A DNA stretch of 64,000 bases, from contig MCFE01000185.1 in NCBI GenBank assembly GCA_002104905.1, positions 74,348 through 138,347 of the forward strand, given 5' to 3'. This document shows, in pieces, positions 39,350 to 64,000 of the stretch (its first letter is position 1; each line of letters starts with the position of its first letter). Both the position numbers and the translations under genes were made by a program. This stretch comes from Basidiobolus meristosporus CBS 931.73. Taxonomy: Eukaryota > Fungi > Basidiobolomycota. The notes under the pieces were generated by a model that saw only the letters and a program-made list of their open reading frames with translations, did not search any database and was not told the DNA's origin.

Positions 39350-42300
39350 TCATGCAGTATAAGCTGCTGGCGGTTTCTCGTTGATTTCCTCCTCTTTGTC
39401 ATCGTTTTCGTCCATAACAATCACCCGGCTTTTGAGGAAGGTGCGTTTGAGGAACTTGTAAAACTCGGAAAACACTATGAAGATCACGACCGATACCGCA
39501 ACGATTGACCACTCCCAGGTAAGTGCCTTGTGCCTAAAGATTTCGGTATTAAGGTACGGAATGTACAGGATAGGGAAGATCAGGATAACACCCAGAGTGA
39601 AGCTGCCGACTAGAGCCTTGTTCTCGAACAATCCTGGCAAACTCTTGGGAAGCCATTGGGGCTGGCGTAAGCTCCGGCAATTATACGCATGGATTAGGAA
39701 GAGCAATGTCAATGTTGTGAAAATGGTACCGCGAGCCCTGAATACCGCATCGCAGCTATCGGAGTAGGTGCGGCTACACTCAGTTCCTAGTGATCCGTCA
39801 CCGAAGGCATATACCACTAGAACGAAATCTGCCAGAGCAATAAGTCCCATGACTGTGCCATAGAGAATAATGTCAGCGATAGCCTCATGCGTAAATAAGC
39901 CTCCTTTAGCCTGTCTTGGTGGAACGCGCATGGTCAAGGGGTTGGCAGGTTCAAGGCCTAGAGACATAGCAGGGGGAGAGCTCGTGACCATATTCAAAAA
40001 GAGAATCTGAACGGGGGACATCGGGTTGACAGACTTTCCATCAACATCGATAAAAGCAAGGCCAATGATCAATGCGATAATCTCAGAGACGTTGGTGGAC
40101 ATGAGATGTAGGACGAACTTCTGAATATTGGTGAAAATGCGACGACCCTCTGCTACAGCACGGACGATGGTTGAGAAGTTATCGTCAGTAAGTACGATGT
40201 CGGAGGCATTCTTGGCAACATCAGAACCACCCATTCCCATGGCAATACCAATATTGGCAATTTTCAAACTAGGAGAATCATTTACGCCATCTCCGGTCAT
40301 TGCTGCAACTTTTTTACGTCGGTGGAGTGCCTCGATCATCTTCACTTTGGTGTCAGGGCTACAGCGAGCAATCACATGTGGCAGCTGAGGGAGATTGTCC
40401 ACTTCCTCATTAGTAAGAGAGTCAAATTCGGTAGCAGTCATGACCAGTTTTGCGCTTTCCTTGCTAGCTTGATAATCTGCAGGGAGAATAGCAACTTCTC
40501 TGGCGATGGCTGTAGCGGTAGCAGGATGATCTCCGGTTAACATATGTACCCGAATACCGGCTTTGTAGCACTCGCGCACTGCGTCTTTAGACTCTGCGCG
40601 AGGTGGGTCGTAAATCCCAACCAGTCCTAAGAATACCATGTTTTTGTCAACTTGGTCACGCTCCCAGTAGTCAGGGTGTGTTTCAGAAAGCTGGGGCTCG
40701 ATGTAGCGATATGCAAGGGAGAGTACGCGGAGCCCATTCGAGGCAAGTGTGTCAACTTTGCTTCCGACCATCTGCAACAGCTCTTCTTTTTTCTCGATCA
40801 TTACCTCCTTATCACCGACTCGGACACGGGTGCAGCAGTCGATTACCCGCTCTGTAGCACCTTTCAAAAAGGCAATGTGCTTTCCAGAATTAGCTTCGGT
40901 ATAGACTACGCTCATACGTTTGACAGTCGATTCAAAGGCAAATTCAGCGTGAATATCGAATAAAGCTCGTTGACCATCAACCTCCTTGGTGAGGGCAGGT
41001 TTACCGCTACCAAGTTTAGTGGCAAATACTTGCAAGGCAGTTTCTGTAGGGTCTCCAATCCCGATCCATTGGTTGCTTTTCTTGTCTTGCTTAATGACGG
41101 CCATATTGCACAAGGCGGAGACTTGGATCATTCGTCGCATCGTAGTACTCATGTTATCTTTAGAGATCTTCCGGGCGTTAGGACCAGGGCCAGACATGGA
41201 AACCTCAGCAAGCTCATCTTGGGTGAGCTCGCCCAACTGGAATATTTCACCTTCGGGATTAAATCCTTTTCCGCTAATCTCGTAATATCCATCACCAGGC
41301 AGATAAGCTTTTGTCAAGACCATCTTGGACTGCGTCAAAGTTCCTGTTTTGTCGGAACAGATATTGGTGACCGAGCCTAGAGCTTCTAAAGCGCTGAGCT
41401 GCCGGACAATCGCCTTATTCGTGGCCATGGTTCGGACACCAGCCGCCATAGTTAGTGTGACTACCGCAATAAGCCCTTCAGGAATCACAGCAATACCCAC
41501 GGAAATCGCATAGATTGCAACATCCCCAGAGATCTTGAATTTGTTTACACCAAATACGATCAGAGCTAACAGTATCGCCAATCCAAACAATACAAGGGCC
41601 ATTTTGTCAAGGGACCGTTGCAAAGCAGTTTTCCCGGAGCTTCCACTCTCAAGAAGCCTTTTTGCGATTTTACCAATTTCGCTCTCCATTCCGGTTGCAG
41701 TGACAATGCCTTTTCCACGGCCTTTGGTAACAGTGGTACTGGCATACACCATGTTTCTGCGATCGCCTATAGGCTCCTCAGGGTCTTGTACAAGCTCCAG
41801 TGTCTTCGGAACTGGGACAGACTCTCCAGTTAGCAAAGCTTCATCCACTTCCAAATTGAAGCTCTCAAATAAACGGCAATCAGCACCAATCACATCGCCG
41901 TTTTCAAAAAGTAGAATATCACCCTAATCACGGGTAAGAGTTCTGATTAGTCAAGCTCATCCAAACATGAGGGCGTGACTGGTTTTAGGCTTACCGGAAC
42001 AACCTCAGTGGTTGATACATGGATTTGGTGACCGTCACGGACAACGTGGGAAGTGGGTGAGGCCATCTTTCGTAGGGAATCCATGGTTTTTTCCGCGCGA
42101 TATTCTTGAAAGAAACCGATGGTGGTATTAAGGACGATCACAAAGGCAACGACAGCCCCTTCCACCCAGTCTTTGACCGAGAATGCAACGCCCTACAGGT
42201 GGCATTGTTACTAAAGTCACGAAGAGAATTTTCAAACTGTAAGTCACCTTACCATTGCAATGATTAGAATTACTGTCAAGTAATTGGCAAGTTGCCGCAG

Positions 42301-54899: not shown

Positions 54900-55175
54900 A
54901 GCAAACTAAGAATTGTTATAATAGTCTTGGAGATAATGGAAGTGATTGGGAGAACAAGTGGACTACATGGTTTTCACTCAAAGAGTTATTGAATGCAAAA
55001 GTATTATTTATACTTTTGCCTGATCTTGGCAAAGCAAACATGTAGAATATGCTGAGGAAGGCCCCAAAAACATATGTGCAAAGTTTGGGGCTGTTTGGAC
55101 AACTTATCAAAATTTCATGTTCTGGGTGCTTGATATTTTGGTGAAAATATTCAGAGTCCCAGCCAGAAATTTAAT
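54900..55175. repeat. Last copy of the ~280-bp repeat, ending at telomere-like sequence
   Basis: Contains GAAGTGATTGGGAGAACA, GGTTTTCACT and GCAAAGTTTGGGGCTGTTTGGACAACTTATCAA. Homology stops at ~55175. Confidence 0.75.
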
Positions 55176-55194
55176 TTAGGGCAAGGGTTAGGGG
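55176..55194 (+). repeat. Interstitial telomere relic TTAGGG-CAAGGG-TTAGGG-G
   Basis: Three in-register hexamers seen directly. Confidence 0.7.
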
Positions 55195-55326
55195 TCTGAA
55201 TTCCTTTTGTGAGTCTGATAAAGTACAGTAATAAAATTTCAACTGATACAAGTTGAATAGGGTTAGGGGGGGAGACAGTCACCAACAGGTGAAATCTTTA
55301 TTTCAGTTGAAACAAAGAAGCCAGCG

Positions 55327-58095
55327 CTACTGTTGTAGCTTTGATACAAGCGTGTGTAGCTGAGGGGAATTTGTAGGTAAGTTAATAAGAAGCGATGATA
55401 GTTCTTCAGTGCTCAAGACACTGTTCAGTGGGAAGGGGGGTAGCAAGAGAGGTAAGAATGACTTGTGAACAACATTAATGAGGGGAATGTGATAAGGATT
55501 AATATTCATCATAAAGGGAGTGTGCTGCTGAAGATATTGCTGCCAAAGGTCTGTCAAGTACTTTAGGTAGGCCAGCTTGGGTTTTTCTGACTGCAGAATG
55601 TAGTGAGCAAACTTCTTGACTTCAGGATCTCCAAGTATAGTTCTCCAGCAGGAGCCAGGTATTGTGTGGTGTGTTCTCTTCCAGGCCTTAATCAGTGGGT
55701 TGTTGCAGTTGTGAAGTCTGAGGTATAATCTGGTTCTAAGGTAGAGAAGTCTAATCTTATAGGGCATAAACCCAAAAGCACCAAGAATAGCATGTCTGTA
55801 GGGGCATTCAGGCAAATGAGGCACCAAGGAGGTAATGCACCATACTGCAAACTTGTCAAGCTTAGTGCAGTCTCTAGAAGTAAGAGAGAGAAGTGGTAAG
55901 CCAAATTCCAGGACAGGGAAGACAAACTGCTTGAGTAGAAGGAGGCAGCTGGGAGCTGAAGTTGTAGGAGGAGTAACAGCCAGTAGCTTGTGGAGTGCCT
56001 GTCTTGCCAGGATAATTCTCTTCTTCAGGTGTGCTCCAGAGTCTAGTCCAGTAGGAAGGAAAGGAAAGCCAAGATATGTAGCAGAAACCTGAGCAGGTAG
56101 AGTGGAGTTCTCCAAGTTGATGGGAGAGCCCAAAGGTACTGTCTTTGCAATGGAAAGCTGGAGATTATTCTTCTGCAGATACTGGTGGATGGTCTGGGAG
56201 TCTTGTTGCACATTGGAGGAGGATATTCTGATGTCATCAGCAAAGAGAGTAACCAGGCAGTCAGCTGAGAGTCTTGGGAAATCATTCAGGAAGATGGCAA
56301 ACAGTATAGGACCAAGCACAGAGCCTTGAACCACTCCATTAGGAACTGAGAACACAGCTGATTGCTCACTTGGGTGCAGAATTCTTGCTTGTGGATCCAG
56401 AAACAGAGACCTGACAAGGAGGGTGAGAGAGATACTGGAGAAGCATTGCAACTTGGACCAAAGCAGATTTCTGTCAACTGAATCAAAGGCCTTAGTAATA
56501 TCAAACAGAACTGAGGGATACTTGCACTGGAGAGAGTGATCTTGGCTAAGTATGACTGCATATTCCAAGGAGAGGCCAGGAACAAAGCCATACTGTGCAG
56601 GATGAAACTTGAGGGAGTCAGAGTTGAGCTCCTGAGCAAGCAGAAGCTCAAACACCTTTCTGCAGGTGGGCAGCAGAGATATTGGCCTGTAGGAGCTAGG
56701 ATCCAGGTGCTTTCCTTTACCCTTGTACAGTGGCAGAACATTGGCAAAGGACCATTCCTCAGGAGTAGAAAGCTGGGCAGAGCATTGCTGAAACAGTGGA
56801 AGCAGAAGTGCAGACATGGCCTTGGTACTAGTCTTCAGAAGCTCATAGGAGATTGTGTCCACACCTGGAGCAGTAGAGTTGGAAAGCCTCTTGAGCACAT
56901 TATGGATTCTCCCTTGATCAAGTGCAAGTGGGATGGGCAGAGTCTTGAAGTCAGGGTGAAAGCCAGGAGTTGAGTACTGCTTTGTAGAGAAGAAGATGTT
57001 AGCCAGCTGTTCTGTTGAAGGTAACTTCCTGGAAGAGGGCCTCATTGCCCTGTAGAGTCTTGATACTGTTCTTGTTATAGAGTTGGAAGATTGCAGAGGC
57101 AAGGAACTCATAATATGATCCCAGAGCTGAGTATGCAGAGTGTGGTGAATTGCCTTGGAGTGGTGTATTGCTGTCAGGAGGAGTTTCTCTGTTTTTGGGT
57201 TAGTGAAACTCAGGTAGCTTTGTTGCAGGGCTGAAACAATGGATTCCCATTTTCTCAAGGTAACAGCAGTAGTCTTGCATGGCAGTGAGAGGGAGGCAGA
57301 CACCAGAATCAGATGCTTCACAAAGAGCCAGGCATAGTTGAGATCATCTGGCAGAGAAAGTAGCAAACTGGCAAGCTTCAAGTAGTTCCCAAAGTCTTTC
57401 TTCTGATTCTTGGTAGCTTTGTGGGTGAGCACAGTAAGTTTTGGCAGCTTCTTCTTCACAACTGGTTGCATAGAAAGGGACCAGGCTGGGTGGTCAGAGG
57501 CTCTCAAGGATCCTAGCTCAGCTCCAGAGAATTGCTTAACTTCATTGACAAAGTAGAGGGCAGCAGCAGAAGGGCAGATCCAGTCAACACATCTTTTCTC
57601 AGATTGAGCACCTAGTGCTAGCAGATGGCTTTCTCTCAGGAAGTTCAGTAGGAATGTAGACCTTGGCTTCATTCTTGCAGTCAGAGTAGTCTTGTTCTCA
57701 GGATGGGGAATGTTGAGATCTCCAAGCAAGATAATAGGTGTTGATATAGATTGCTGGTATTGCTGAACTTTCTGGCATATAACTTGCACTTCCTGAAGAG
57801 CAAGACTTGGAGGCAGATAGCAGAGCACCAGACTGATAGTTGGCAACTGGAGAGCAGCACAGTAAGGGGAGTAAAGAGGAACACAGAGCTGAGGAGTATT
57901 GATGGTAGAAGAGATGAAGCAGATAGAGGAGGTATTCTTTGTACTAGGAGTAGAAAAGCAATATAGATTAGTCAATAGTACAGAGGGTAGCGGGACATCA
58001 ATCAAACACAGGAGGGAAAATCTTGAAAGAAGTCTCTCTAGAGTTGGTCTTGATGGCTGTATGCTGTTGCAGTTAAGCAACAGAACTTCAGGTAG
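55327..58095 (-). CDS. TEL-A ORF2: APE-type endonuclease + non-LTR reverse transcriptase (no upstream AUG)
   Basis: EN motifs LLNCN, LLCLID, CYLPP, LLGDLN, VDWI and SDH. RT motifs APGVDTISY, YRPISLL, QYGF, FDITKAFDSV, GVVQGSVLGPILF, LFADD and YLG. No C-terminal CCHC or RNase H seen. Confidence 0.95.
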   Translation of the reverse strand, partial: LPEVLLLNCNSIQPSRPTLERLLSRFSLLCLIDVPLPSVLLTNLYCFSTPSTKNTSSICFISSTINTPQLCVPLYSPYCAALQLPTISLVLCYLPPSLALQEVQVICQKVQQYQQSISTPIILLGDLNIPHPENKTTLTARMKPRSTFLLNFLRESHLLALGAQSEKRCVDWICPSAAALYFVNEVKQFSGAELGSLRASDHPAWSLSMQPVVKKKLPKLTVLTHKATKNQKKDFGNYLKLASLLLSLPDDLNYAWLFVKHLILVSASLSLPCKTTAVTLRKWESIVSALQQSYLSFTNPKTEKLLLTAIHHSKAIHHTLHTQLWDHIMSSLPLQSSNSITRTVSRLYRAMRPSSRKLPSTEQLANIFFSTKQYSTPGFHPDFKTLPIPLALDQGRIHNVLKRLSNSTAPGVDTISYELLKTSTKAMSALLLPLFQQCSAQLSTPEEWSFANVLPLYKGKGKHLDPSSYRPISLLPTCRKVFELLLAQELNSDSLKFHPAQYGFVPGLSLEYAVILSQDHSLQCKYPSVLFDITKAFDSVDRNLLWSKLQCFSSISLTLLVRSLFLDPQARILHPSEQSAVFSVPNGVVQGSVLGPILFAIFLNDFPRLSADCLVTLFADDIRISSSNVQQDSQTIHQYLQKNNLQLSIAKTVPLGSPINLENSTLPAQVSATYLGFPFLPTGLDSGAHLKKRIILARQALHKLLAVTPPTTSAPSCLLLLKQFVFPVLEFGLPLLSLTSRDCTKLDKFAVWCITSLVPHLPECPYRHAILGAFGFMPYKIRLLYLRTRLYLRLHNCNNPLIKAWKRTHHTIPGSCWRTILGDPEVKKFAHYILQSEKPKLAYLKYLTDLWQQYLQQHTPFMMNINPYHIPLINVVHKSFLPLLLPPFPLNSVLSTEELSSLLINLPTNSPQLHTLVSKLQQ

Positions 58096-59198
58096 TCAGG
58101 CAGAGGTTGTAGCTTCTTCAGAGGCAGCATTGCCAATGTGACCTGCAGAGTCCCAGAGCTCTTCAAATGGTGCATCACTTAAGTCAGCAAGGAGGGAAAT
58201 GGCATGATTCTTGAGGAAGTATGCCACATCATAGGAGGGGGCTTGTCTCTTGATGGCAGCAAAGAAAGACAGAATGGCAACATGGGCTGGAGGCTTGTTG
58301 AACAGTAGAGAGTCAGAGGATTCAGATTCTTCAGGCACTATCTTGAAGTCAGTTTCAGCCAGTTAAGGTTCTTCTCCACAAAGGCAACAAATGGGTCAGC
58401 AATGTTTTGGTCTAGGATAACCTCCAGAATCTTCCCTTTTCTCCAGGCCAGGTTGACAATTCTTGAGAGCTGAATATTGCATGCCTTGAGTGCTTTCCTG
58501 ATGTTGGAAATGGGAGTCCAGGGAACTTGCTTCAAGTACACCACAGTCCAGGTAGAAGCTGGTGGTAGGTTTGCTGGGGGCTTGTAAGTCCTTCTGTGTT
58601 GCAATGGAGCTGCAGTAGTCAGATTGGATTCCACATTCTCAGTAGAGGGTTTTCTTGATGTGTCTTGCTGAATGGTACTGGAGCTGGATGTGCTGATAAT
58701 TCTTGCTACAACCTTGCCTGCATAAGTCTGAGGTATAGCTGAGGTGACTGTAGAGGTGGTAGCAGCTGGTGCAGGTGGAGAGGCAGAAACTGAAGCAGGA
58801 ACTGAGGTCACCTGGGAGAAGGCAGTAGAAGCAGGTTTTCTGGGAGGAACAGAGTTCACTATCCAGTTGTTCTGTAAAACACTGGAGTAGCTTTTCTGTG
58901 GAACAGGATCTTGCTCTTGAACAGGAACAGAAGCAGGAGGCTGGGGCTGAGCAGTGGTGGTAGGGCAGTGACACTCTAAGGAAGCTTTTTGCAAGGCATC
59001 TCTGGCAGTTTTCAGGGCAGTATTGGCTTCATTCTTGAGCTTCTTGCATTGGGCATCCAGTCTCTTGTTTTCAATAGCCAGGGCAGTATTGGCAGCCTCT
59101 AAATCAGCAATTCTCTTCTCAATTGCAAGGAATCTCTGAAGAAATGCATCAGTAGAAGTGCTGGCATCTGGGAGTGCAGTGGCAGGAATAGAGTCCAT
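58096..59198 (-). CDS. TEL-A ORF1 (coiled coil + RRM-like), with a -1 frameshift near 58350
   Basis: ATG at 59198 (MDSIP). Coiled coil IEKRIADLEAANTALAIENKRL; domain WTVVYLKQVP...IVNLAW...ILEVILD. Continues in another frame (APSYDVAYFLK...FEELWDSA), homologous to the uninterrupted TEL-C ORF. Confidence 0.8.
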
Positions 59199-59217
59199 TG
59201 ACAGTGGGCTTCTTGGA

Positions 59218-59713
59218 GGGTTAGGGGGGAGGAAAGTCACCAAGTGGTGAAATCTTTATTTACTTATGACAAGTATCTAAAGAAGCCAAGTTAATCTGAA
59301 GTAATTCCTAGAAAGCTAGGTCTGAGAGATATCTTCCTGGTAAGCCAGGTCTGAGAGTTGAGAAGCTGAGTGGTACTATATTTCCTAGTTAGCTAGGTCT
59401 GAGAGAGGTTTCCTGGAAAGCCAGGCCTGAGAAGTGAGAATCTGAATATATCTGAGCTAAGTTATACTGGTTTGCGGTAGCTGAATTGTGGCCAGAATGG
59501 CCAGTAGACTAGGGGAACTGAGATGAATTTCTGGGCGATCACTGGCCAAATTTACTAGGCAAATCTGACCAATTAGCATTTCAAGGATTTCAGCCAATCA
59601 GAGCCTTTACTTTGCCCAATGGTTGATCAAGCCATCTCCCAATGAGCACACATCAATTTATTGATCAAATTTTGTTAGATCCAGGATTTGATCCCACAAC
59701 CATGGGTATGGAA
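59218..59713 (-). mobile_element. TEL-B1: ~500-bp non-coding telomeric unit with the shared 3' tail
   Basis: Starts GGGTTAGGGGGGAGGAAAGTCACCAAGTGGTGAAATCTTTATTT; no ORF >=60 aa; ends at GGGTTAGGG (59714). A second copy at 63207 is identical over its length by eye. Confidence 0.85.
59569..59643. promoter_or_regulatory. Cluster of four CCAAT boxes in TEL-B1
   Basis: CCAAT at 59569, 59594 (AGCCAATCAG), 59616 and 59639. Confidence 0.4.
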
Positions 59714-59750
59714 GGGTTAGGGATAACCACAAGGCTAAGTGTTCTTGGTT

Positions 59751-60633
59751 GGGTTAGGGTTAGGGGGATGATCATCACCAAAGGGTGAAATCTTCATTTA
59801 AATAATAAACAAAGAAGCCAAGTTTGCATATGAATATCTGAGATGCAGGAAGCCTACAAGATAAACTTGGACTTTGCTGTATCCCAAATATCCTCAATAT
59901 CAAAGTCTAGAGGAGAGTGTAGCAAGACTGCTTGTTCACTGTAGTATTTCTTGAGGAAGTTTGTGACTTGAAGGGAAGGAGAGTTTTTCAACAAGCTGGT
60001 AAATCTTTTGAGGAGTTCTTTTTCCAGAGAGAATGGCACAAAGAGTGGAATGTCCAAATGATGTCTGAATATATGCTCTGAGAGCTCCCAATCCAGCATA
60101 TTTTTGACTTCTTCTGTAAAATCTTCAACAATATCTTTGTCAAGAATAACTTCCAAGAGATCCCTGGCAATGTACTGAATGTTAATAATCTTAGGCATAT
60201 GAATACCTAGGTCCTTGAGGTAGTTTCTTTGTTCTGATATTGGGAGATATCCTGCATTTCTGAAATAGCAAACAGCCCAGTTGGCAGTAGGAGGAGTATC
60301 AGGGCTGACAGGGAATCTTCTTTTGGCTTTAGAGTGCACTGGCTTAGGAGATTGTCTTGATGGAAGGGCAGCTGGTTTTGGATGAGCTTGAACTGCTTGG
60401 GAGTAGGTCTGAGTACAAGTAGTAGAAGTTCCTGGTTGCTGAGAATTTTCAGATTGACTGGATGAAGAGCTAATTGAGGGGTTGCAAGGTAAGGAAGAAG
60501 CTGAAAGAGAAGTGGAGAGGGCTGGGTGAAGTTCAGAAAGAGCTTTGAAAAGAATTTGGATCTGAGATTTCAACATTGAGTTTTCAGCTTCAAGAAGAGA
60601 AACTCTTTGTTCAAGGTAAGAAGTCTGTAAAGA
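59751..60633 (-). mobile_element. TEL-C: ORF1-only telomeric unit (5'-truncated) with the shared 3' tail
   Basis: Starts GGGTTAGGGTTAGGGGGATGATCATCACCAAAGGGTGAAATCTTCATTT. The ORF ends at 59854, only ~100 nt from the 3' end, so no ORF2 follows. Confidence 0.85.
59854..60633 (-). CDS. TEL-C ORF1-like protein, open through the 5' junction
   Basis: Coiled coil LEQRVSLLEAENSMLKSQI; WAVCYFRNAGYLPISEQR...IINIQY...LLEVILDKD aligns with TEL-A ORF1. Confidence 0.8.
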   Translation of the reverse strand, partial: SLQTSYLEQRVSLLEAENSMLKSQIQILFKALSELHPALSTSLSASSLPCNPSISSSSSQSENSQQPGTSTTCTQTYSQAVQAHPKPAALPSRQSPKPVHSKAKRRFPVSPDTPPTANWAVCYFRNAGYLPISEQRNYLKDLGIHMPKIINIQYIARDLLEVILDKDIVEDFTEEVKNMLDWELSEHIFRHHLDIPLFVPFSLEKELLKRFTSLLKNSPSLQVTNFLKKYYSEQAVLLHSPLDFDIEDIWDTAKSKFIL

Positions 60634-60936
60634 GGGTAGGGGGGGGGAGACAGTCACCAACAGGTGAAATCTTTATTTCAGTTGAAACAAAGAAGCCAGC
60701 GCTACTGTTGCAGCTTTGATACAAGAGTGTGTAGCTGAGGGGAATTTGTAGGTAAGTTAATAAGAAGTGATGATAGCTCTTCAGTGCTCAAGACACTGTT
60801 CAGTGGGAAGGGGGGTAGCAAGAGAGGTAAGAATGACTTGTGAACAACATTAATGAGGGGAATGTGATAAGGATTGATATTCATCATAAATGGAGTGTGC
60901 TGCTGCAGATATTGCTGCCAAAGGTCTGTCAAGTAC
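60634..60936 (-). mobile_element. TEL-A3: ~300-bp 5'-truncated TEL-A
   Basis: Matches the 3' end of TEL-A. Preceded by GGGTAGGG; followed by TTAGGGTTTAGGG. Confidence 0.92.
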
Positions 60937-60946
60937 TTAGGGTTTA

Positions 60947-63172
60947 GGGTAGGGGAGGAGACAGTCACCAACAGGTGAAATCTTTATTTCAGTTGAAACA
61001 AAGAAGCCAGCGCTACTGTTGTAGCTTTGATACAAGAGTGTGTAGCTGAGGGGAATTTGTAGGTAAGTTAATAAGAAGTGATGATAGTTCTTCAGTGCTC
61101 AAGACACTGTTGAGTGGGAAGGGGGGTAGCAAGAGAGGTAAGAATGACTTGTGAACAACATTAATGAGGGGAATGTGATAAGGATTGATATTCATCATAA
61201 AGGGAGTGTGCTGCTGCAGATATTGCTGCCAAAGGTCTGTCAAGTACTTCAGGTAGGCCAGCTTGGGTTTTTCTGACTGCAGAATAAATTCAGCAAACTT
61301 CTTGACTTCAGGATCTCCAAGTATAGTTCTCCAGCAGGAGCCAGGTGTTGTGTGGTGTGTTCTCTTCCAGGCCTTAATCAGTGGGTTGTTGCAGTTGTGA
61401 AGTCTGAGGTATAATCTGGTTCTAAGGTAGAGAAGTCTGATCTTATAGGGCATAAACCCAAAAGCACCAAGAATAGCATGTCTGTAGGGGCATTCAGGCA
61501 AATGAGGCACCAAGGAGGTAATGCACCATACTGCAAACTTGTCAAGCTTAGTGCAGTCTCTAGAAGTAAGAGAGAGAGGTGGTAAGCCAAATTCCAGGAC
61601 AGGGAAGACAAACTGCTTGAGTAGAAGGAGGCAGCTGGGACCTGAAGTTGTAGGAGGAGTAACAGCCAGTAGCTTGTGGAGTGCCTGTCTTGCCAGAATA
61701 ATTCTCTTCTTCAGGTGTGCTCCAGAGTCTAGTCCAGTAGGAAGGAAAGGAAAGCCAAGATATGTAGCAGAAACCTGAGCAGGTAGAGTGGAGTTCTCCA
61801 AGTTGATGGGAGAGCCCAAAGGTACTGTCTTTGCAATGGAAAGCTGGAGATTATTCTTCTGCAGATACTGATGGATGGTCTGGGAGTCTTGTTGCACATT
61901 GGAGGAGGATATTCTGATGTCATCAGCAAAGAGAGTAACCAGGCAGTCAGCTGAGAGTCTTGGGAAATCATTCAGGAAGATGGCAAACAGTATAGGACCA
62001 AGCACAGAGCCTTGAACCACTCCATTAGGAACTGAGAACACAGCTGATTGCTCACTTGGGTGCAGAATTCTTGCTTGTGGATCCAGAAACAGAGACCTGA
62101 CAAGGAGGGTGAGAGAGATACTGGAGAAGCATTGCAACTTGGACCAAAGCAGATTTCTGTCAACTGAATCAAAGGCCTTAGTAATATCAAACAGAACTGA
62201 GGGATACTTGCACTGGAGAGAGTGATCTTGGCTAAGTATGACTGCATATTCCAAGGAGAGGCCAGGAACAAAGCCAAACTGTACAGGATGAAACTTGAGG
62301 GAGTCAGAGTAGAGCTCCTGAGCAAGCAGAAGCTCAAACACCTTTCTGCAGGTGGGCAGCAGAGATATTGGCCTGTAGGAGCTAGGATCCAGGTGCTTTC
62401 CTTTACCCTTGTACAGTGGCAGAACTTTTGCAAAGGACCATTCCTCAGGAGTAGAAAGCTGGGCTGAGCATTGCTGAAACAGTGGAAGCAGAAGTGCAGA
62501 CATGGCCTTGGTACTAGTCTTCAGAAGCTCATAGGAGATTGTGTCCACACCTGGAGCCGTAGAGTTGGGAAGCCTCTTGAGCACATTATGGATTCTCCTT
62601 TGATCAATTGCAAGTGGGATGGCCAGAGTCTTGAAGTCAGGATGAAAGCCAGGAGTTGAGTACTGCTTTGTAGAGAAGAAGATGTTAGCCAGCTGTTCTG
62701 TTGAAGGTAACTTCCTGGAAGAGGGCCTCATTGCCCTGTAGAGTCTTGATACTGTTCTTGTTATAGAGTTGGAAGATTGCAGAGGCAAGGAACTCATAAT
62801 ATGATCCCAGAGCTGAGTATGCAGAGTGTGGTGAATTGCCTTGGAGTGGTGTATTGCTGTCAGGAGGAGTTTCTCTGTTTTTGGGTTAGGGAAACTCATG
62901 TAGCTTTGTTGCAGGGCTGAAACAATGGATTCCCATTTTCTTGAGGTAACAGCAGTAGTCTTGCATGGCAGTGACAGGGAGGCAGACACCAGAATCAGAT
63001 GCTTCACAAAGAGCCAGGCATAGTTGAGATCATCAGGCAGAGAAAGTAGCAAACTGGCAAGCTTCAAGTAGTTCCCAAAGTCTTTCTTCTGATTCTTGGT
63101 AGCTTTGTGGGTGAGCACAGTAAGTTTTGGCAGCTTCTTCTTCACAACTGTTGCATAGAAAGTGACCAGGCT
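60947..63172 (-). mobile_element. TEL-A2: ~2.2-kb 5'-truncated TEL-A retaining an open RT frame but no endonuclease
   Basis: The ORF matches TEL-A1 ORF2 from VVKKKLP onward with about 14 substitutions. Homology ends at 63172, just short of the SDH motif. Confidence 0.93.
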
Positions 63173-63206
63173 TAGGGTGTAGGTGTTATAGTAAGGGCTA
63201 GAAAAA

Positions 63207-63381
63207 GGGTTAGGGTTAGGGGGGAGGAAAGTCACCAAGTGGTGAAATCTTTATTTACTTATGACAAGTATCTAAAGAAGCCAAGTTAATCTGAAGTAAT
63301 TCCTAGAAAGCTAGGTCTGAGAGATATCTTCCTGGTAAGCCAGGTCTGAGAGTTGAGAAGCTGAGTGGTACTATATTTCCT
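63207..63381 (-). mobile_element. TEL-B2: 5'-truncated TEL-B (~175 bp)
   Basis: Matches 59218-59386 up to TATATTTCCT, then GGGTTAGGG. Confidence 0.9.
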
Positions 63382-63766
63382 GGGTTAGGGTTAGGGGGGA
63401 GACAGTCACCAACAGGTGAAATCTTTATTTCAGTTGAAACAAAGAAGCCAGCGCTACTGTTGTAGCTTTGATACAAGAGTGTGTAGCTGAGGGGAATTTG
63501 TATGTAAGTTAATAAGAAGTGATGATAGTTCTTCAGTGCTCAAGACACTGTTCAGTGGGAAGGGGGGTAGCAAGAGAGGTAAGAATGACTTGTGAACAAC
63601 ATTAATGAGGGGAATGTGATAAGGATTGATATTCATCATAAAGGGAGTGTGCTGCTGCAGATATTGCTGCCAAAGGTCTGTCAAGTACTTCAGGTAGGCC
63701 AGCTTGGGTTTTTCTGACTGCAGAATAAATTCAGCAAACTTCTTGACTTCAGGATCTCCAAGTATA
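63382..63766 (-). mobile_element. TEL-A4: ~385-bp 5'-truncated TEL-A, capped directly by the telomere
   Basis: Matches the TEL-A 3' end up to CCAAGTATAG, then TTAGGG repeats begin. Confidence 0.92.
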
Positions 63767-64000
63767 GGGTTAGGGTTAGGGTTAGGGTTAGGGTTAGGGT
63801 TAGGGTTAGGGTTAGGGTTAGGGTTAGGGTTAGGGTTAGGGTTAGGGTTAGGGTTAGGGTTAGGGTTAGGGTTAGGGTTAGGGTTAGGGTTAGGGTTAGG
63901 GTTAGGGTTAGGGTTAGGGTTAGGGTTAGGGTTAGGGTTAGGGTTAGGGTTAGGGTTAGGGTTAGGGTTAGGGTTAGGGTTAGGGTTAGGGTTAGGGTTA
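63765..64000 (+). repeat. Telomere, (TTAGGG)n
   Basis: 38 perfect TTAGGG from 63770 to 63997 plus TTA at the window end; G-rich strand runs toward the end. Confidence 0.98.

Follow-up and report, generated by a model that had tools for sequence, protein, structure and literature searches.

A chromosome end of Basidiobolus meristosporus that is probably built by a consortium of telomere-specific retroelements

Telomere-specific retrotransposons are known from insects, in which they carry an apurinic/apyrimidinic endonuclease (APE-type), from Drosophila, in which they replace telomerase, and from a few fungi, in which they belong to the CRE clade with a restriction-enzyme-like (REL) endonuclease. 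In the Penelope-like elements (PLEs) Athena and Coprina, the 3' ends carry telomere repeats in reverse complement, which might allow pairing with the G-overhang; these elements encode a PLE-type reverse transcriptase (RT) and no endonuclease. Cnl1 forms subtelomeric arrays in Cryptococcus. MoTeR1, Cnl1 and FoTeR are REL-endonuclease elements of the CRE clade that group with SLACS, CRE and CZAR (PMC12857005). Here, a stretch of 64,000 nucleotides from the fungus Basidiobolus meristosporus CBS 931.73 (the window) is described, of which the last 8.8 kb, up to the end of the contig (C463), consist of an array of a long interspersed nuclear element (LINE), named A, and two partners, named B and C. 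We consider it likely that this region is a chromosome end built by a telomere-specific consortium of retroelements without long terminal repeats (non-LTR), through priming at the end and re-capping by telomerase.

Sequence reading, repeat finding and Tandem Repeats Finder (TRF) all reproduce the seven head-to-tail units at 55261-63765, their order A1-B1-C-A3-A2-B2-A4 and their common orientation, as given in an initial annotation of this DNA. The sense, or coding, strand of all seven units is the minus strand, so that every 3' end faces the centromere. Between neighbouring units lie one to three telomere-like units, and the array is capped by (TTAGGG)39; (TTAGGG)2 is counted 40 times in the window compared to 0.01 expected by chance. 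A spacing of one to three telomeric repeats had been proposed throughout, but C and A3 are separated only by a degenerate GGTAGGGGG without a full TTAGGG, and 63176-63208 holds an irregular, telomere-like filler of 33 nt that has similar counterparts at the junctions of other arrays. The terminal tract exists as annotated, although with 39.3 copies (TRF) instead of 38. Likewise, the units do begin where the array had been placed, from 55260, but its true start lies at 55176, where a telomere-like seed and a 62-nt piece precede A1. This 62-nt piece (55196-55257) has no match among the sampled loci. The features are, in window coordinates:

55176-55260, plus strand: array base, consisting of the seed TTAGGGCAAGGGTTAGGGG, the 62-nt piece and then a GGGTTAGGGGGGG unit before the A1 tail (sequence reading)
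55261-59215, minus strand: A1, a copy of the autonomous LINE (median 98.5% identity to other copies)
55261-55329, minus strand: 3' untranslated region (UTR) of A1, equal to the shared tail module (RNA fold, tail alignment)
55330-58095, minus strand: open reading frame (ORF) 2 of A1, open over 922 codons (Pfam, alignment, AlphaFold2 (AF2) and Foldseek)
58096-58098, minus strand: in-frame UGA, then CUA, between ORF1 and ORF2, a candidate readthrough site (conserved in relatives)
58099-59198, minus strand: A1 ORF1 with its ATG at 59198, frameshifted (comparison with 30 copies)
59217-59748, minus strand: B1, a full-length non-coding unit of 532 nt resembling a short interspersed nuclear element (SINE) (more than 50 copies with the same 5' end)
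59749-59765, plus strand: junction of the B1 5' end and the C tail, telomere units GGGTTAGGGTTAGGG
59766-60634, minus strand: C, an ORF1-only element, 5'-truncated (ORF 59854-60636)
60641-60936, minus strand: A3, the 3'-terminal 296 nt of A, with a degenerate GGTAGGGGGGGGG unit ahead
60950-63175, minus strand: A2, a 5'-truncated copy that retains 2.2 kb from the 3' side of A, with the RT and the C-terminal part of ORF2 (ORF of 741 amino acids, RVT_1 6.8e-25)
63176-63216, plus strand: A2/B2 junction, the irregular telomere-like filler and then GGGTTAGGGTTAGGG
63217-63381, minus strand: B2, the 3'-terminal ~165 nt of B (100% identical to the matching part of B1)
63393-63765, minus strand: A4, the 3'-terminal 373 nt of A and the outermost unit
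63765-64000, plus strand: terminal tract (TTAGGG)39, reaching the contig end (TRF, 39.3 copies, 100% matches)

The truncated 5' end of A4 is fused directly to the terminal TTAGGG tract. In agreement with the earlier statement that the preceding 55 kb hold no further copy, window 1-55260 matches A, B and C neither at the DNA nor at the protein level. The layout is similar to that of HeT-A, TART and TAHRE of Drosophila, which also form head-to-tail terminal arrays with their 3' ends toward the centromere and with variable 5' truncation. Another likeness to these elements is the biased composition of the strand that continues the 3' end of the chromosome. The sense strands of A, B and C in 55261-63765 are G-poor (14-18% G), and the strand continuing the telomeric G-strand is therefore G-rich, with a GC skew of +0.2 to +0.34.

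Position and polarity were also assessed genome-wide, among the best-scoring copies only. The proposed confinement to contig ends in a single orientation was borne out: each of the 36 A copies that were scored has 98-100% identity to A1 and is located no more than 6.8 kb from a contig end, and the tail motif is found 1224 times in forward and 101 times in reverse orientation, with 0 control hits. As (TTAGGG)6 occurs 6728 times on the plus strand compared to 68 times on the minus strand, tails and telomere tracts share their polarity. Telomere tracts are carried by ~200 contig ends, many of them on contigs of 10-20 kb that are almost wholly array. Nearly every assembled telomere is the right-hand end of its contig, which looks like an orientation convention or an assembler effect. 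The DNA sequencing runs consist of short contigs, mostly of the sample from which the assembly probably came, and show more than 150 alternative joints, which represent many different arrays. Contigs that terminate in element tails, namely a B tail and an A tail, are also found in a second sample bearing the same species label (8.9 kb and 12.8 kb).

A, B and C share a 3' module of ~70 nt that consists of two hairpins, a spacer, a C-run and CCCTAA units, with no poly(A). In A1, the module comprises hairpin 1 (CUUCUUUGUUUC/GAAAUAAAGA), hairpin 2 (UCACC-UGUU-GGUGA), a spacer, a C7 run and UAACCC, and this tail has a predicted RNA fold of -18.1 kcal/mol (z -3.4). The tails of A, B and C align together with those of D, another family of this genome discussed below, and with that of a relative found in a different sample. 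Common to all aligned tails are TGGCTTCTTT...AAATAAAGATT, CACC-loop-GGTG, a spacer of 7-9 nt, C5-7 and TAACCC(TAA)n. The same two hairpins are predicted in the folded tails of A, B, C and the relative (z -1.8 to -3.4). This foreign relative has an ORF2 58% identical to that of A and a tail ending in CCCTAACCCTAACC. Hairpin 1 varies between families in its apical part and length. On the plus strand, the tail of B1, which is of the A type, has the loop AAGT, the C tail the loop AAAG and the D tail, of the same design, the 6-nt loop AAGGTA. No unit has a poly(A) or A-rich 3' end; all end in a C-run followed by TAACCC(TAA)n.

As far as sequence can tell, these features are those of a stringent LINE whose RT would be borrowed by its partners, and they support B and C as separate non-autonomous families sharing the 3' module of A. 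The sharing of the A hairpin module by B, C and D corresponds to stringent LINE/SINE pairs, in which it is a classic sign of trans-mobilisation by the LINE RT; in contrast to such pairs, a telomere repeat terminates the Basidiobolus tail, and the partners are restricted to chromosome ends. The chromosome-end polarity and the telomere-complementary 3' ends are also features of Athena and Coprina, whereas A is a LINE with an RVT_1 domain, an APE endonuclease and an ORF1.

The junctions indicate how the units may have been added. Of 124 tails in the sampled arrays, 78 have one telomere-like unit ahead of them, 35 have two, 9 have three to seven and 2 have none, whereas the terminal tracts of these arrays contain ~30-39 units. 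The unit adjacent to a tail thus behaves as part of the 3' end of the element, as would the copy of an RNA ending in CCCUAA, and new units are not placed randomly within long tracts. Several ends have an outermost A, either full-length or variously truncated, that is fused directly to the long tract, showing that telomeric repeats are added onto element ends. In pairwise comparisons of copies within a locus, the younger-looking one is the outer copy in 50 cases and the inner copy in 29, while 42 pairs are tied, and the oldest fragments (88-94% identity) are mostly found at the inner edges. These copy ages weakly favour distal addition.

The full-length A element is ~4.6 kb long, with a 5' UTR that contains an internal CCCTAACCCTAA and a variable number of ~100-bp monomers. 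A1 had been called near-full, which needs qualification: ~630 bp of the 5' UTR present in other, full-length copies are missing and ORF1 is frameshifted, making this copy defective; its ORF2 of 922 codons is open. The frameshift results from a 1-bp deletion near 58352 that leads to a premature stop at 58338-58340; reads of other copies have an extra T behind 58352, the base absent from A1. Among 30 near-full copies from other contigs, the ORF1 frame is uninterrupted over 372 codons in 23, compared to 291 codons in A1, and the 922-codon ORF2 is open in 29. In these copies, ORF1 and ORF2 lie in the same frame with one UGA between them. The ratio of nonsynonymous to synonymous polymorphism (pN/pS) of ORF2 is 0.26 among the 29 intact copies, and the variants shared among intact ORF2 copies are 37 synonymous and 15 nonsynonymous. 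To judge from these substitution patterns, selection for function has acted on the A family during its evolution, which is what lineages with recent activity would be expected to show. The 5' truncation of A is variable, both in the window (A3, A2 and A4) and genome-wide, with many truncation points.

The proposal that A encodes an APE endonuclease and an RT is well founded. Pfam identifies RVT_1 in A1 ORF2 (E 3.9e-25, residues 466-678) and in A2 (E 6.8e-25), and the best solved relative of ORF2 is human L1 ORF2p (E 4.9e-12). The N-terminal residues ~1-205 align with canonical LINE endonucleases, with D126, N128, D171, S200, D201 and H202 being invariant in the alignment and with an aspartate (LIDV) in place of glutamate in motif II. 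The catalytic D, N, D and SDH are also invariant across relatives at 43-56% identity. The AF2 model of this domain (pLDDT 84.3) retrieves the L1 endonuclease, the TRAS1 endonuclease and APE1 in Foldseek at probability 1.0 (E ~1e-10), and the TRAS1 endonuclease structure 1wdu matches the model with a TM score of 0.69 on the target. The Pfam match to Exo_endo_phos_2 (E 2.6e-4, 21 bits) is under the cut-off of that family, and phmmer with the endonuclease domain found no match among PDB sequences. By alignment and predicted fold, the endonuclease is therefore of the APE type, as is the LINE that carries it. Pfam detects no RNase H or REL domain in ORF2. Outside the A family, the closest RT matches in a homologue search and the ESM Atlas are arthropod APE-LINEs at no more than 32% identity; these searches returned only LINEs with APE and RT, none of which provides a clade name.

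A is thus comparable to TRAS1 and SART1 of Bombyx (R1 clade), which have an APE-type endonuclease followed by the RT, with an endonuclease structure (1wdu) that the A model matches, and which are inserted in fixed orientation in telomeric repeats of a host with telomerase. A differs from them in having no poly(A), and its ORF1 has a coiled coil and a domain resembling an RNA recognition motif (RRM) instead of CCHC knuckles. In addition, the junction tracts in Basidiobolus are only 1-2 units long and ORF1 and ORF2 are in frame around UGA-CUA. With MoTeR1/2, Cnl1 and FoTeR, the system has in common the fungal host, the arrays at chromosome ends, the pairing of an autonomous with a non-autonomous element (MoTeR1/MoTeR2), the variable-number tandem repeats at the 5' end and the telomere-like repeats within the element. 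However, these elements carry a REL endonuclease C-terminal to the RT (PMC12857005), whereas A has an N-terminal APE domain and an ORF1.

Two further observations concern sequences related to A. At L031:1785-2277 (contig C191), distal to the A copy of that locus, a segment with only 68% identity to A probably represents a further telomeric LINE family of the same genome, one that is more diverged. Run X5 (labelled organism B, 2022) contains two low-depth contigs ~99% identical to the RT region of A (window 61708-61965 and 62624-62806), which are trace Basidiobolus DNA or come from a very close relative in that sample.

The partners form families of their own. More than 50 copies of B, at 97-99% identity, share a single fixed 5' end. 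The body of B carries internal repeats, and its description as non-coding is correct in that it has no ORF of 80 amino acids or more. The sense strand has an A-box-like motif at nt 12-22 (1 mismatch) and a B-box-like motif at nt 55-65 (2 mismatches), a pair that was matched in only 1 of 2000 shuffles; a T4 terminator is absent from B. By these features, B is a SINE-like element with motifs resembling the boxes of RNA polymerase III promoters. A tRNA origin of the B head was rejected, as ARAGORN and Rfam (E up to 1) gave nothing and only the box-like motifs remain.

C has one ORF in the window, of 268 codons and homologous to LINE ORF1, which agrees with its annotation as an ORF1-only element and a real family, except that this copy is slightly 5'-truncated: it ends a few codons past the ATG and has neither ATG nor 5' UTR. 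The family comprises more than 45 copies at 87-100% identity in two subfamilies, nearly all with an open ORF, and fuller copies have the ATG and a 5' UTR of 103-bp monomers, each ending in GGGTTAGGG. The C ORF is 24% identical to A ORF1 over the alignment and 33% over the best BLASTP stretch; an origin of C as a recent internal deletion of A was rejected because of the 24% identity. Elsewhere in the genome, outside the window, D is a second ORF1-only family with an open frame of 271 codons and 48% identity to C, of which the scored open copies number more than 70 (for example L004:79-891, L013:5747-6472 and L032:1283-2026). The ORFs of C and D are open in most of ~120 copies. The view of two non-autonomous partners thus stands for B and C as separate families, but with D the consortium is larger than three components. 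An autonomous LINE with a partner encoding only Gag or ORF1 is also found in the Drosophila system, where HeT-A is the parallel to C, and to D elsewhere.

The 5' UTRs of A and C contain a variable number of monomers of ~100-103 bp, up to seven (L006:6071-6766, L015:6068-6270 and L032:4233-4600). The monomer regions have embedded telomere units and a GGATGGATGG motif on the plus strand, and a CCATCCATCC motif is located near the 5' end of the relative in L060. These monomers may be promoter units.

An alignment of the ORF1 proteins from A, C and D with those of three relatives extends over a coiled coil and a conserved region of ~150 residues toward the C-terminus; A ORF1 itself has a coiled coil and a conserved C-terminal domain. 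In the AF2 model, the C protein has a long N-terminal helix, a disordered linker, a beta-alpha-beta-beta-alpha-beta domain and then helices. The best structural matches of this model are RRM domains, at only Z <=7.5 (VIA-align); Foldseek of the ORF1 fold gave no significant match, and Pfam gave no hit for zinc knuckles (CCHC) in ORF1. An L1-like ORF1 layout (coiled coil, RRM and C-terminal domain) is, at the level of predicted models, a lead and not a result.

In A and three relatives with 47-62% ORF2 identity, ORF1 ends in SA-UGA-CU(A/C) (window 58096-58098 on the minus strand, L058:2112-2114, L060:1666-1668 and L059:905-907). The UGA is followed after 5-6 codons by the first endonuclease motif, which reads LLLNCNS or, in one of the relatives, LLLNCHS, and no AUG is present between the two in three of the four lineages. 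This suggests that ORF2 may most simply be made by stop-codon readthrough, with the conserved junction being a candidate programmed site.

The genome encodes a TERT RNA-binding domain at G000:C935 (Pfam Telomerase_RBD, 40.5 and 34.7 bits, cut-off 25 bits). The elements therefore act beside telomerase and not instead of it, which supports the former of the two alternatives that the initial annotation had left standing. Unlike Drosophila, Basidiobolus thus has TERT and a (TTAGGG)39 cap, and its arrays do not replace telomerase repeats; moreover, its units end in telomere repeats and not in poly(A), it has a SINE-like partner and it is a fungus.

From this anatomy, we infer addition onto chromosome ends. 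In the mechanism that is proposed here, the A-encoded RT would recognise the shared hairpin module, while the terminal CCCUAA of the RNA would pair with the TTAGGG G-strand of a very short or deprotected end, the timing of addition presumably being tied to telomere shortening. The 3' OH of the G-strand would then prime reverse transcription, and the cDNA, G-rich like the telomeric strand, would lengthen the chromosome. Synthesis would frequently stop early, yielding 5'-truncated copies, after which telomerase would re-cap the new end with TTAGGG repeats. Over repeated rounds, a head-to-tail series would build up in which every 3' end faces the centromere.

Several points weigh against this mechanism or limit its basis. 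The observations include no transposition event, RNA 3' end or RNA expression. The conserved endonuclease argues that nicking matters, and the mechanism may not be one of pure end priming. As hairpin 2 varies in its loops only, it gives no covariation proof of the structure. The age gradient is weak, is derived from non-independent pairs and is absent in the window, where the A copies are all at 98.5-98.7%. Furthermore, one tail is located ~18 kb from a telomere tract on contig C1, and diverged interstitial copies are possible, since the genome-wide scoring was limited to the best-scoring copies. Finally, no contig or read piece spans the array, and its unit order may partly be a product of assembly.

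A site-specific insertion as in TRAS and SART would give similar arrays if the APE endonuclease nicked a telomeric or tail-junction motif and the arrays grew by intercalation into short internal TTAGGG stretches, including regenerated junctions. The invariant catalytic residues in diverged relatives and the match to the TRAS1 endonuclease fold speak for such a scheme, and the conservation of the endonuclease keeps it alive. The internal junctions of only 1-2 units would fit the re-use of a regenerated short target, and the window has no age gradient. However, random nicking of the tract predicts proximal tracts of 0-39 units, whereas the observed maximum is 7 and 91% have 1-2, so that nicking would be needed at short telomeric or tail-junction motifs. 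Since the oldest fragments tend to be innermost and the outermost units directly adjoin the long tract, both contrary to intercalation, this route appears unlikely, though not far-fetched.

Recombination or break-induced replication could also have spread the arrays between chromosome ends, in which case they would now be mainly subtelomeric repeats and retrotranspose rarely, if at all. Copies 98-99% identical are present on more than 30 ends and the same junction types recur in many read contigs, while an ATPase paralogue of 87% identity on another array-ended contig suggests duplicated chromosome ends. We regard this explanation as very improbable: more than 150 different junctions and truncation points, together with a tail module common to unrelated bodies, contradict a spread by recombination, and an ORF2 that is open in 29 of 30 copies with a pN/pS of 0.26 is not expected of passive repeats. 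That the unit order in the window is an artefact, resulting from near-identical repeats that were collapsed or mis-joined where the contig ends, is improbable as well. Such an origin is favoured by the absence of a spanning contig or read piece, by the 98-100% identity of the units to copies elsewhere and by the location of nearly all telomere tracts at right-hand contig ends. Yet the architecture recurs at every sampled end, each with its own specific junctions, and in an independent sample unique contigs run into tails. An artefact would, moreover, touch only the exact order here and not the phenomenon. End priming with telomerase re-capping is therefore retained as the likely origin of this chromosome end.

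Proximal to the array, window 1-55260 contains genes for a glycosyl hydrolase 15 protein, a P-type ATPase, a cyclin and a FAD monooxygenase. The ORF of the P-type ATPase (ENA-type, 39350-41893, minus strand) is 86-87% identical to proteins of Basidiobolus ranarum and B. meristosporus CBS 931.73. Its 87%-identical paralogue is located on contig C507, which also ends in an A-containing array, a possible sign of duplicated chromosome ends or of homeologues in a polyploid genome. Immediately on the proximal side of the array, a 40-nt segment (55112-55151) that is 87-92% identical, in both orientations, to sequences in the subtelomeric loci L008, L015 and L024 may be a small subtelomeric repeat or a miniature inverted-repeat transposable element.

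By analogy with the described systems, the consortium would appear to work like HeT-A/TART with respect to polarity and the Gag-only partner, and like TRAS/SART with respect to the APE endonuclease and the telomerase-bearing host. It is set apart from all of them by its telomere-repeat tail, type of ORF1, in-frame readthrough junction, SINE partner and fungal host. Full-text literature searches returned no paper on telomeric elements of Basidiobolus and none describing a telomere-specific SINE; likewise, no report of this combination in a fungus was found in them, in line with the initial assessment. A more far-reaching proposal, which we would put forward only tentatively and with more doubt than belief, is that the consortium is a working second layer of telomere maintenance. 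An eroded telomere of one or two repeats would then be extended from RNAs ending in CCCUAA and re-capped by telomerase. A division of labour like that of HeT-A and TART, between an autonomous LINE, Gag-only partners and a telomere-specific SINE, would thus have been reached by convergence in an early-diverging fungus, at ~200 assembled ends.

The system unites an APE LINE with telomere tails, ORF1-only partners and an end-confined SINE-like element, at ~200 telomeric contig ends of a culturable, telomerase-bearing fungus. The in-frame UGA-CUA may, in addition, exemplify readthrough-dependent expression of ORF2 in a LINE. If the consortium is active, as the selected intact ORFs suggest, it would be a tractable model for the sharing of chromosome ends between retroelements and telomerase, for how Gag-only telomeric partners arise and for whether a mixed stage preceded the state found in Drosophila.

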